In this document: positions 17,515 through 62,323 of the stretch, piece after piece
Position numbering within the stretch: position 1 is the first letter of the stretch
How the letters are laid out: each line of letters opens with the position of its first letter
IMG/VR virus record: IMGVR_UViG_3300045971_000577
Location: 186,001-250,000 of that record
Reading direction: 5' to 3' (one strand)
Length of the DNA: 64,000 nucleotides
Translations under genes and position numbers: made by a program
Notes under the pieces: generated by a model
What the model was told of the DNA's origin: nothing
Database searches by the model: none
Seen by the model: only the letters and a program-made list of their open reading frames with translations

Positions 17515-18173
17515 AGCTTACCTACCTTCATTGGACTGGTTTTCTTTACGCGGCCGAAGAAACCAACATCGGCTGTTTTTAGATTTTTAGGATTATTGAA
17601 TCCGTCATACCCCTTAGGTAGGGTAGAATGATCAGTCGATGCATTAGGACTCAATGGGTTATTTACGGTAACAATTGGTCTTTCTTTACGGACTTGTTCA
17701 AGTTCCTTCAAGAATCCCGTTGTATATGCTTCTCCGTAAGGAACGGCTTCTCCGCCCTCGTAATCACTCCCGAGTTGTGTCTTGTACTTTGCTTTGAACT
17801 CTGGAGAATTTCTGTCTAGATACAAATCTGTTTCAATTTGTCTTGGGTCATTTTCAGAGTATACAGCTAGTTGACCTGGAGAAATTCCAAGATTGTTGCA
17901 TACATATGTTCTTAGGAAATCAAGCGAACCCGGATATCCAAGAACTAGATCGCAAATGAATACAGGTGTATTCTTAACATTTGGAAAATCAAGCGGACTT
18001 TCCTGAATAGGTGTTTTTCTAAATGACGATGCTGACTTTAGGTCATACTTCTTTAACGAAGTTTCCAAACTATCAACCATCGCATCTGTCATTTCGTTCA
18101 CAGCAAACTTCAAGACATACTTATATGCTGTCTTTGTTTCTGCAACGTATGATGTAAAAGATTTCTCTGCCAT
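17511..18173 (-). CDS. Conserved structural-region hypothetical protein
   Basis: Long ORF in the late cluster. Confidence 0.75.
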   Translation of the reverse strand: MAEKSFTSYVAETKTAYKYVLKFAVNEMTDAMVDSLETSLKKYDLKSASSFRKTPIQESPLDFPNVKNTPVFICDLVLGYPGSLDFLRTYVCNNLGISPGQLAVYSENDPRQIETDLYLDRNSPEFKAKYKTQLGSDYEGGEAVPYGEAYTTGFLKELEQVRKERPIVTVNNPLSPNASTDHSTLPKGYDGFNNPKNLKTADVGFFGRVKKTSPMKVGKL

Positions 18174-40165: not shown

Positions 40166-40287
40166 GAAGTTTTGCTCAGCAAAAAGCCGCTCTTGGAGCG
40201 GCTTTTTCATGTATGGCGTCTCTAAGAAGAATCCAACTTCTATCTTGACCTTAGGAGTGTCTTATTCTATGCATTGAACTATAGAGA

Positions 40288-40512
40288 CTATCTTTCTGCT
40301 TTTTCAAGTCTATCGTAGTAATCAGGAAACTCGTTCAAATGATCTAATGCAATTTCTTTAGCAAGGTTGAGATTACCTGTATGTTCTTGTTCAACCTTGA
40401 TACCCTTACGAAGCTGATTTGCGAGATCGTTATACGGAACTCCGTGCTTCTTTAGCACTTCCTGGAAGGAAGGGGTTTTCTTACCCATCATGTCGAATTC
40501 GTATAATCTCAT
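40288..40512 (-). CDS. DUF5661-like small protein (MRLYEF leader)
   Basis: GIKVEQEHT....AKEIALDHL.EFPDYYDRL. Confidence 0.75.
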   Translation of the reverse strand: MRLYEFDMMGKKTPSFQEVLKKHGVPYNDLANQLRKGIKVEQEHTGNLNLAKEIALDHLNEFPDYYDRLEKAER

Positions 40513-40520
40513 TTTGTCCC

Positions 40521-40610
40521 TGGAGGATGATTAAAGAATCGAACTTTCCCCGGCTCATCACCGAGGGGCAAACTTTCGAAATTTGTTAGCGCCCAGCGCA
40601 CCTATCATCC
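40521..40610 (-). tRNA. tRNA-Ser(CGA), atypical class II
   Basis: GGATGAT/ATCATCC acceptor, U73, CCA; loop TT-CGA-AA; long variable arm; 5-bp D stem; 4-bp T stem. Confidence 0.75.
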
Positions 40611-45346: not shown

Positions 45347-45823
45347 TCATTCTTTATGCGTTATGTATTCGACAAACCTATATCTATGATTATCATCACT
45401 TGATGATGTCTCACTACTTATCCTCCACAGTGCGGAATCGATGTTCGGAAAGAACGTGTCTGCTTCGCACTCGATATCAACGTGAGTTATTACCAGCTTA
45501 TCAGCGAATTCGATAGTTTGTGCATAAACAGATGCACCACCTATAACCACAATCTCGGGATAGCAGTGTTCAATGGATAATGCGTCCTTGACGCTTTTTG
45601 CACGAATTGCTGCGCCGTGCAGATCTTGAGTGGAAATTACTATACACTTTCGTCCAGGCAGTGGCTTACGCCCAATGCTCGTGAAAGTATTATGACCCAT
45701 GATAACAACCTTTCCCAGGGTGTATTTTTTGAAGTGCTTTAGATCCTCTGGAATATGCCACAGAAGTTTATTTCCTAAGCCGATCTCGTTATTTCGGCCT
45801 ATTGCTGCAATCAGTGTTATCAT
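45347..45823 (-). CDS. folA: Dihydrofolate reductase
   Basis: IG.GNKLLWHIPEDLKHFK, IMGHNT, PLPGR, IGGASVY, DTFFP. Confidence 0.95.
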   Translation of the reverse strand: MITLIAAIGRNNEIGLGNKLLWHIPEDLKHFKKYTLGKVVIMGHNTFTSIGRKPLPGRKCIVISTQDLHGAAIRAKSVKDALSIEHCYPEIVVIGGASVYAQTIEFADKLVITHVDIECEADTFFPNIDSALWRISSETSSSDDNHRYRFVEYITHKE

Positions 45824-46120: not shown

Positions 46121-46212
46121 TGGTAGGAGCGTAGGGAATCGGACCCTATCGAGAACACCTATCTAGTGCTAAGAGGCTTATAAGACCTCCCTGACTGCCA
46201 AGTCTCGCTCCC
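46121..46212 (-). tRNA. Class-II-type tRNA with UAU anticodon (Ile-like)
   Basis: GGGAGCG/CGCTCCT acceptor, A73, CCA; loop CT-TAT-AA; 24-nt variable region; T-loop TCCGATT. Confidence 0.7.
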
Positions 46213-46649: not shown

Positions 46650-46723
46650 TGGAGCGGGATAGGAGAATCGAACTCCTTTGACTAGCTTGGAAGGCTAGGA
46701 CACAACCAATATGCCAATCCCGC
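46650..46723 (-). tRNA. tRNA-Gly(TCC)
   Basis: GCGGGAT/ATCCCGC, loop CT-TCC-AA, U73, CCA. Confidence 0.92.
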
Positions 46724-47098: not shown

Positions 47099-47515
47099 TC
47101 AAAAACTCTTGCCTTCGGCATATCTTTCTCTACGTGAATGGCGACCGTTACCTTTATTTCTGCCTTTATAAGTTGGTGTATAACTATGGCAGTTTGGACA
47201 AAGTAACTCCACATTGTCTTCGTGATCGTTTGCGCTATTCCCGTCTTTATGTTCTAACTCGAGATTTATGGGTTTGCCCATCCATTCTGTATTCTTGCAA
47301 TGGTTACATGTACCATTCTGTTTTTCAAATAAATATCTCTTCAACCAGGGTGCCGAGCCTGTGCCACTTTTTGCATTGTGTGTAATCTTCCATTCTGCAA
47401 TCTTTAGATTGTACTGAAAGTCTACCTGACACCTAGTGGAACAATATTTATTTTTCTTTCTATGCTTATCGTATTTACATTCCTGTAAACAAGATAAACA
47501 TTTGTATGTAGTCAT
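47099..47515 (-). CDS. HNH endonuclease (Zn-ribbon type)
   Basis: KYCSTRC; LELEHKDGN..N...NVELLCPNCH. Confidence 0.88.
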   Translation of the reverse strand: MTTYKCLSCLQECKYDKHRKKNKYCSTRCQVDFQYNLKIAEWKITHNAKSGTGSAPWLKRYLFEKQNGTCNHCKNTEWMGKPINLELEHKDGNSANDHEDNVELLCPNCHSYTPTYKGRNKGNGRHSRRERYAEGKSF

Positions 47516-47519
47516 TTGT

Positions 47520-47593
47520 TGGTGCCCCCACACAGAATCGAACTGCGAATTGATGATTACAAGTCAACTGTTATGCCATTTAACTATGAGGGC
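47520..47593 (-). tRNA. tRNA-Thr(TGT)
   Basis: Cloverleaf, loop CT-TGT-AA, CCA. Confidence 0.9.
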
Positions 47594-47659: not shown

Positions 47660-48487
47660 TTAGTTGATTGCACAAACTTCAGCCTTTGCAGCCTTAGCAC
47701 TCTTTGTGGCAGAGGGCCAGATCTTGTCGGCGTATTTGACGGATTTTGGCACGGGAAATACGATACCAGTCTCTTTTTGCACTTGAGCAAGGCTAGATAA
47801 GAACTTGGTCAAACTACCAGATGCAGCTTCGTGGTTAAATCTGAATACCATTGCTTCGTTTGTTTGCGTGTCGATGATAATCTTGTAGAAGCCGTTAGGC
47901 ACAGTTACCAAGTTTGCACCCATTGTCTTATCTTGCTTCTGGTTATAAATCGGCCCAGCATAGATAAGCAAGGTGTGCGAACGGTTGATTGCCCAAGCAC
48001 GAGTTTGGTCTTCGAGCTTTTTCCAAATGCCACGGTTGAATTGCGGCAGTTGTGGAGTCATGTTGCTTAGGATAAAGCTTTCTCTTGCTGCTTCTGGATT
48101 CCAGCTCATATCTGCACTGTTGGCAATGTGGCCTGTATCGTATCCGGACTTGGCATAATCCTTTAGTTCGGCACGCTTATCAGCTGGCAACGAACGGTCG
48201 GACTTGAACACAGACATTCTCTTTTCGCAGCCAGTTGCATTTTCCGGCTTCAATGTGTAAGACACCCACTGCGGAATCTTTGCCTTGTTATCGTGCTCGA
48301 GCAGATATGCTTTACGACAGATAACGGCTGTGTCATGTTTCTTGACAACAGGCTGACCATACGGAATTTGGGCAACACATTGTTCGATTGGAAGTGGCGG
48401 ATCCTGTGACTGGGCTGCTGCCGACACAGAGAATGCGAATAGAATTGAATATGCGATTTGTTTGATCATAAAAATGCCTATGTGCAA
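47660..48487 (-). CDS. Secreted DNA/RNA non-specific endonuclease (NucA/EndoG family)
   Basis: Signal peptide; GYDTGHIA, ESFILSNMTPQLPQFNRGIW. Confidence 0.9.
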   Translation of the reverse strand: MHIGIFMIKQIAYSILFAFSVSAAAQSQDPPLPIEQCVAQIPYGQPVVKKHDTAVICRKAYLLEHDNKAKIPQWVSYTLKPENATGCEKRMSVFKSDRSLPADKRAELKDYAKSGYDTGHIANSADMSWNPEAARESFILSNMTPQLPQFNRGIWKKLEDQTRAWAINRSHTLLIYAGPIYNQKQDKTMGANLVTVPNGFYKIIIDTQTNEAMVFRFNHEAASGSLTKFLSSLAQVQKETGIVFPVPKSVKYADKIWPSATKSAKAAKAEVCAIN

Positions 48488-48622: not shown

Positions 48623-49018
48623 CTAGTATAGCGGCAAACCTAATGATTTGCGACCTCTACCTTTGTTAGCTGCACCTAAAAACTCTGTCTGATAATGGCA
48701 GTTTGGGCATAGTAGTCTTAGATTTGTTGGATGATCATTACTCGAATCACCATTTGTGTGATCTACGTGCAATGTGAGTGGCTTACCTAACCATTCTGTA
48801 ACACCACATTCAGGTATTTCACATTTGTATCCACGAACTTCAGCAATATAAGTTCTTGCTGTAGGACGATCTATTCGTGTGAGCTTTCCAGCCCAAAAAT
48901 CTTCTCGATGTTGTTTAGCTTTCGATTGTGAAGCACATTTCACACTACAATACTTGTTGTTACTTTGATAACTCCATTTACATTCTTTATTACAAAATCC
49001 ACAGGTATATGTTTTCAT
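48623..49018 (-). CDS. HNH endonuclease (Zn-ribbon type)
   Basis: KYCSVKC; LHVDHTNGD..N...NLRLLCPNCH. Confidence 0.88.
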   Translation of the reverse strand: MKTYTCGFCNKECKWSYQSNNKYCSVKCASQSKAKQHREDFWAGKLTRIDRPTARTYIAEVRGYKCEIPECGVTEWLGKPLTLHVDHTNGDSSNDHPTNLRLLCPNCHYQTEFLGAANKGRGRKSLGLPLY

Positions 49019-62247: not shown

Positions 62248-62323
62248 TGGTGCCCTTTGTCAGAATTGAACTGACCTTTCATCTATACCAAAGATGCGTG
62301 TTCGCCAATGTCACTAAAAGGGC
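62248..62323 (-). tRNA. tRNA-Thr(GGT)
   Basis: Cloverleaf, loop TT-GGT-AT, CCA. Confidence 0.88.

Follow-up and report, generated by a model that had tools for sequence, protein, structure and literature searches.

A phage-borne family of tRNA-Ile(UAU) genes with a conserved variable-region hairpin, putative TilS-independent readers of AUA

Bacteria normally read AUA with a tRNA whose CAU anticodon is modified to lysidine by TilS, and their isoleucine tRNAs are class I. Of all sense codons, AUA gives bacteria the most difficulty; its reading normally needs the essential TilS, and most isoleucyl-tRNA synthetases (IleRS) reject an unmodified UAU anticodon. Bacterial tRNA-Ile(UAU), found in Mycoplasma mobile, a tilS-bypass suppressor of Bacillus subtilis and lactic acid bacteria, decodes AUA without lysidine (PMC3575796, PMC3919564). 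UAU is combined with a long variable arm in the nematode nev-tRNA-Ile(UAU), a eukaryotic class II tRNA with a tRNA-Leu-like body that is charged with leucine in vitro (PMC3333845), and in the (8/4) allo-tRNA(UAU) species of Acidobacteria, Clostridia and Proteobacteria, allo-tRNAs having an 8/4 or 9/3 arrangement of acceptor and T stems and G73 or U73 (PMC5389517).

The gene described here lies in a 64,000-nucleotide stretch (the window, bases 186001-250000) of a complete virus record of 369,145 bp with direct terminal repeats, which came from a pond metagenome. The tRNA and its relatives share the canonical UAU loop and A73 with bacterial tRNA-Ile(UAU) but are phage-borne and carry a conserved hairpin of ~15 nt in the variable region; we know of no bacterial UAU tRNA-Ile with a long variable arm. 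The nematode nev-tRNA is likewise class II with UAU and A73, but it is a nuclear gene with a leucine-type body, whereas the phage family has a class-I-like body, uses AUA as isoleucine and, in this case, sits in a phage genome with a tmRNA. The allo-tRNAs share the long variable arm and UAU, and the window copy, one of three distinct sequences known from a sub-lineage that we call type A (with G003 and G018), further resembles them in its short D hairpin with a tetraloop and its extended anticodon stem. The phage family, in contrast, is 7/5 with A73. An 8/4 fold was rejected for type A, as the eighth pair is mismatched in all three sequences (A8 faces A65 in the window). Full-text literature searches, which stopped short of the literature on chromosomal tRNA-Ile(UAU) of lactobacilli, returned no description of a 7/5 class II tRNA-Ile(UAU) with such an arm.

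A sequence-only reading of the window had described a UAU anticodon, a 24-nt variable arm, a short D stem with a one-nucleotide connector, G1:U72, A73 and a TCCGATT T loop, and this anatomy was confirmed by ARAGORN, the sequence itself and the predicted fold (Table 1). The minimum-free-energy structure is a five-arm cloverleaf, with a z-score of only -1.6. The acceptor stem has 7 bp, the T and anticodon stems have 5 bp each, and the 7-nt anticodon loop contains U33 and the purine A37, all as in a general cloverleaf. The D stem can be drawn with 3 bp (GAC/GUC) or with 4 bp (GACU/AGUC) closing a UGGC loop. A variable region of 24 nt (46149-46172) with its own hairpin separates the anticodon stem from the T stem, as in class II tRNAs and in place of the 4-5 nt class I variable loop of tRNA-Ile. 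The anticodon, however, is not one for leucine, serine or tyrosine, and the D arms of the family, with 4 bp and a 7-nt loop, are of class I style. The general tRNA model of Rfam (RF00005) did not match the window copy even at E<=10.

Table 1. Locations of the tRNA-Ile(UAU) gene, its parts and the other features discussed. Coordinates without a record name are window positions.
Feature	Coordinates	Strand	Remarks
tRNA-Ile(UAU), whole gene, 92 nt	46121-46212	-	ARAGORN tRNA-Ile(tat); covariance model R1, 48 bits; fold
Encoded CCA	46121-46123	-	A73 at 46124
Acceptor stem, 5' strand	46206-46212	-	7 bp with 46125-46131; first pair G1.U72; all 7 pairs covary across the family
Compact D arm, GACUUGGCAGUC	46193-46204	-	preceded by one connector nucleotide (46205); specific to the type A sub-lineage
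Anticodon arm	46171-46191	-	loop CUUAUAA; UAU at 46180-46182; 5-bp stem, extendable by G.U pairs
Variable-arm hairpin	46154-46170	-	stem AGCAC/GUGUU; loop UAGAUAG at 46159-46165
T arm	46132-46148	-	5-bp stem; loop UCCGAUU at 46137-46143, with C at position 55
tRNA-Gly(UCC)	46650-46723	-	conserved upstream neighbour of Ile(UAU) in the island (ARAGORN, synteny)
tRNA-Thr(UGU)	47520-47593	-	conserved member of the island segment shared with Ile(UAU) (ARAGORN, synteny)
DUF3135 ORF, 96 aa	45820-46110	-	starts 10 nt downstream of the tRNA-Ile(UAU) 3' end; context only
HNH endonuclease genes	47099-47533; 48623-49018	-	scattered among the window tRNA genes
DNA/RNA non-specific endonuclease gene	47660-48487		within the tRNA island
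DHFR gene	45347-45823		within the tRNA island
tRNA found by Rfam	40217-40288	-	missed by ARAGORN
Ser(CGA) with U73; Thr(GGU)	40521-40610; 62248-62323	-	ARAGORN calls; absent from Rfam at the gathering score
tRNA with CUA (amber-reading) anticodon	source phage (G000 C1) 255570-255644		outside the window
tmRNA	G000 C1 261189-261528		outside the window
Asn(GUU), 87 nt	G000 C1 273515-273601		outside the window; long variable region
Met(CAU), 86 nt; Cys(GCA), 92 nt; Glu(UUC), 86 nt; Gln(UUG), 89 nt; Trp(CCA), 89 nt	G001 136168-136253; 159304-159395; 171813-171898; 173908-173996; 174004-174092		long variable regions
Leu-anticodon tRNAs (UAA, CAA, UAG), 76 nt	G000 C1 265765-265840; 272414-272489; 273245-273320		no long arm
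ARAGORN calls with four-base anticodons (tttg, ctaa, agtg)	G011 266270-266347; G008 17576-17650; Latilactobacillus phage L225 1415-1492
Aberrant copy at the syntenic site	G001 C1, about 122,590-122,695	-	no ARAGORN call
ROOL RNA (RF03087)	L227 1-242		145 bits; cut by the contig end

The source genome has a GC content of 45% and carries 47 tRNA genes and one tmRNA, with readers of A-ending codons forming the majority of the tRNA set. ARAGORN identified 14 tRNAs in the window, every one on the minus strand. The island around Ile(UAU) resembles the tRNA sets of T4-type phages in holding Thr(UGU), Gly(UCC), Ser(UGA), Arg(UCU) and an AUA reader; T4-type sets read A-ending codons as well, and the tRNAs of T4 are of standard shape. 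The amber-reading CUA tRNA and the tmRNA of the source phage are both also present in G001 and G002, and the tmRNA in G008. A look for expression data brought up the tRNA locus in only two sequencing runs, both of pond-metagenome DNA, and the tRNA-Ile(UAU) sequence in the second pond-metagenome sample was identical.

The terminase of this phage has 112 relatives in IMG/VR, and the larger terminase-related records were searched by BLAST, ARAGORN and R1, a covariance model built from three relatives with the window copy left out of training. R1 recovered the window copy at E 1e-11 in 271 kb. An exact search of IMG/VR with the anticodon arm gave no match, and a synteny search starting from the adjacent DHFR gene reached a contig that stops before the tRNA site. 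Conservation in relatives, which the sequence-only reading had put forward as a check, was found in the form of orthologues in related phages with the same gene order: in G002, G003, G004, G005, G007 and G018, a UAU tRNA of 92-99 nt stands in the arrangement Thr(UGU)-Gly(UCC)-Ile(UAU), and Ser(UGA) is often next. Further afield, a pattern combining the anticodon loop and the arm identified the gene in a separate complete phage of 149 kb, and a second pattern identified it in 26 further IMG/VR contigs (4-210 kb) and in four contigs of metagenome-assembled genomes (MAGs) with dense tRNA arrays, one assigned to Acutalibacteraceae and three to Acidobacteria. BLAST against GenBank phages added the cultured Latilactobacillus phage TMW 1.1393 P1 and Lactobacillus phages Lpa804 and LpeD, whose copies have no tRNA annotation in GenBank. 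Altogether ~40 relatives were gathered from related huge phages, cultured Lactobacillus phages, IMG/VR contigs and MAG tRNA arrays. In several arrays the Ile(UAU) gene adjoins a tRNA-Ile(GAU). The Acutalibacteraceae contig (L227), which also carries the class II Ile(UAU), has a ROOL RNA beside its tRNA array.

Family members with a canonical D arm scored 47-69 bits on the Rfam tRNA model, and only the type A sub-lineage failed it. The odd D arm and T loop that the sequence-only reading had listed are present in the window copy, but they mark a small sub-lineage or that copy alone and do not characterise the family. With C55 in place of U, the T loop UCCGAUU is shared by the window copy and its orthologue in G008 (L146), and the other relatives have UUCGA. 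This G008 orthologue, at the same site of the island, is a plain class I tRNA(UAU) of 74 nt with G1.U72 and A73. Its size, close to that of the tRNA minus its arm, would suit an event that the sequence-only reading had named as a refutation of its view, namely that the extra hairpin is excised after transcription in an intron-like manner to leave an ordinary tRNA of 70-odd nt. Such processing nevertheless appears highly improbable: the host is bacterial, as the phage has a tmRNA, a bulge-helix-bulge motif is absent, a group I intron would have to be far longer than 24 nt, and ordinary variable-loop nucleotides flank the arm.

Aligned members of the family (n = 27) had 97.4% of base-pair cells paired, 20 of the 24 pairs varied on both sides, and the covariation score reached 0.86, compared with 0.21 after shuffling and 0.12-0.17 in controls with slid partners; these figures carry the caveat that the alignment was fitted to the structure of the model. 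Of 42 members, 40 have A73, and every one has an anticodon loop of the form YUUAUAH. The R1 score of the window copy and the shared gene order go beyond chance, and this is a real, conserved phage tRNA gene. Within type A, the three sequences differ from one another by six double compensatory differences and by no helix-breaking change, which indicates that the unusual form in the window is maintained and is not decaying.

These observations also bear on the possibility that the gene yields no decoding tRNA, being either a tRNA-like RNA that serves as decoy or regulator through its GAU-loop hairpin, for example by soaking up a host anticodon nuclease or some other factor directed at tRNA-Ile, or, for type A, a decaying pseudogene. 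The failure of the window copy on the Rfam tRNA model would fit such a role, as would the longer, aberrant copy at the syntenic site in G001, which has an A3.C70 mismatch, an odd D region and a loop UAGAUAA on a wholly different 6-bp stem. Mukai et al., moreover, suspect that most allo-tRNA(UAU) species are unused in translation (PMC5389517). A link between the gene and AUA usage, a check named by the sequence-only reading, was likewise not borne out. With three genomes, AUA made up 25-30% of isoleucine codons in the two with an ARAGORN-called gene and 13% in G001, but the relationship was gone with 11 genomes, where G004, G005 and G007 have the gene and 14-17% AUA and G011 and G012 lack it and have 26-30%. 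On the other side, purifying selection has acted on the four standard helices and, besides them, on the canonical form of the anticodon loop, on A73 and on the CCA, the type A helices have been kept through compensatory change, and the gene sits inside islands of ordinary tRNAs. A role outside decoding is therefore unlikely in our judgement.

The meaning of AUA was examined by pairing proteins of this phage with those of G001 or G002, which gave 321 pairs. AUA codons aligned with isoleucine in 55-56% of cases, valine in 14% and leucine in 10-11%, and since this profile is the same as that of AUU and AUC, AUA means isoleucine in these genomes. In the same pairs, leucine codons aligned with leucine in 65-76% and serine codons with serine in 46-56% of cases. 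AUA accounts for 1.6% of codons in the phage.

Mistranslation was the other outcome that the sequence-only reading had raised. The gene would then encode a missense tRNA, deliberate or tolerated, that is a substrate of LeuRS or SerRS and causes AUA to be read partly as leucine or serine. The class II architecture together with A73 would favour it, as leucine tRNAs also combine a long variable arm with A73. LeuRS and SerRS do not read the anticodon (PMC9976931), and the leucine charging of the nematode nev-tRNA-Ile(UAU) in vitro (PMC3333845) and the allo-tRNAs (PMC5389517) offer precedents. Yet AUA sites behave as isoleucine sites in three genomes, and the codon has the 1.6% share given above. 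The structure of the family also argues against such a substrate, in that the D stem of most members has 4 bp with a 7-nt loop, unlike tRNAs for leucine, serine or tyrosine, the G73 of serine tRNAs is found in no member, and the unpaired nucleotides on both sides of the arm (2-5 and 4-6) are unlike canonical class II arms. A conserved arm loop sequence is nothing that recognition by SerRS or LeuRS would need, and the class I orthologue in G008 points the same way. We regard mistranslation as improbable.

The complete phage genome had no match to PF00133, PF00587 or PF01171, the domain families of IleRS/LeuRS/ValRS, SerRS-type synthetases and TilS, respectively. A dedicated phage-encoded partner of these types was accordingly rejected, and any dedicated phage partner protein is disfavoured by the presence of a family member in a temperate phage of 35 kb with 54 annotated features. 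With no IleRS/LeuRS or SerRS-type match in the phage, host enzymes would have to charge the tRNA. The bacterial isoleucine identity elements are A73, C4-G69, U12-A23, C29-G41, G34 (or modified C34), A35, U36, A37 and A38 (PMC9976931). The tRNA presents A73 and a UAU anticodon (A35, U36) followed by A37, and anticodon and A37 are kept in all members. The minor identity pairs known from E. coli are replaced in the window copy, which has A4-U69, a remodelled D stem and G29-C41 and of this minor set retains only A38. Elsewhere in the family, U12-A23 is present in the majority of canonical members, and C4-G69 and C29-G41 are minority pairs. Charging by the host is not assured, because E. coli-type IleRS charges UAU tRNAs poorly (PMC3575796).

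Weighing this evidence, we consider it probable (roughly two chances in three) that the gene encodes a functional, host-charged, TilS-independent tRNA-Ile for AUA. We favour this reading on account of the nearly invariant A73, the class-I-like body, the class I orthologue in G008, the position next to tRNA-Ile(GAU) in arrays and the isoleucine meaning of AUA. The bypass of TilS through the UAU anticodon, which the sequence-only reading had suggested, gains support here, the complete phage genome being without a TilS-domain match. That the tRNA is expressed, charged with isoleucine and used at AUA is what we infer from sequence comparison, as is whatever part the arm may play. Under this model, the UAU anticodon, of the unmodified type, would read the rare AUA codon without the host lysidine enzyme TilS, and a host IleRS would charge the tRNA. 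The long arm is a conserved, sequence-specific hairpin on a tRNA-Ile body that is otherwise class-I-like, and it may be recognised by a universal host factor, most plausibly IleRS. The small sub-lineage of the window copy has remodelled its D arm and retained all helices through compensatory changes.

The extra-arm motif, common to many phages, was absent from the sequence-only reading. Members form the arm as a hairpin whose stem has 3-6 bp, most often 4. Unpaired nucleotides flank it: 2-5 on the 5' side, where two outliers have six and nine, and 4-6 on the 3' side. Its stem covaries and has at least a dozen sequences, and its loop has the constant form YAGAUWR (UAGAUAG, CAGAUUA, CAGAUAG, CAGAUAA and UAGAUAA). 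The loop, but not the stem, was preset in the search patterns for many members; the loop core AGAU was also found in G001, G002, G003 and G007, which were recovered solely through synteny, BLAST or the model. Counted from the loop, the third pair is C:G in all 27 aligned members, and its neighbouring pairs are freely variable. That the arm is a copy of a dispersed repeat was rejected, the hairpin sequence occurring once per genome, as was the idea that its loop displays AUA to the tRNA's own anticodon, since the common form CAGAUUA has no AUA.

A more specific function may be considered. GAU centres the 7-nt loop of the arm and the invariant C:G lies at the place equivalent to C29-G41, so that both features correspond to isoleucine identity elements, and the hairpin resembles a shortened tRNA-Ile(GAU) anticodon arm without U33. 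The arm could thus mimic that anticodon arm, so that IleRS would read the GAU-like hairpin and the ribosome the UAU arm. The arm stem did not resemble the anticodon stem of the tRNA-Ile(GAU) that the same genome encodes. We hold this idea as speculative and rather doubtful, given the unproven geometry and the post hoc nature of the match. If it were true, the phage would possess an AUA decoder for any host that needs neither TilS nor an adapted IleRS.

Other tRNAs of unusual form were observed in this clade. Asn(GUU), Met(CAU), Cys(GCA), Glu(UUC), Gln(UUG) and Trp(CCA) tRNAs, which normally have a short variable loop, have long variable regions in the source phage or in G001 (Table 1); for Asn, Glu, Gln and Trp the additional segment forms a paired hairpin, and none of the six is like the Ile(UAU) arm. 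Conversely, the leucine-anticodon tRNAs of 76 nt in the source phage stand beside normal Leu tRNAs of 85-87 nt, and the same was seen in the Acidobacteria arrays (L230, L231). Four-base anticodons were called by ARAGORN in G011, G008 and a Latilactobacillus phage.

A widespread, phage-borne family of tRNA(UAU) genes with a constant small hairpin points to a mode of working across hosts, or of protection from hosts, that has not been described. GenBank phage records overlook the gene or leave it without annotation, and the Rfam tRNA model does not recognise its most derived form; AUA readers are therefore undercounted in inventories of phage tRNAs and in arguments from codon usage. Members in cultured Lactobacillus phages make the hypothesis testable at the bench. 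A portable, TilS-independent decoder of AUA, if that is what these genes encode, would be of interest for reassignment of the AUA codon.
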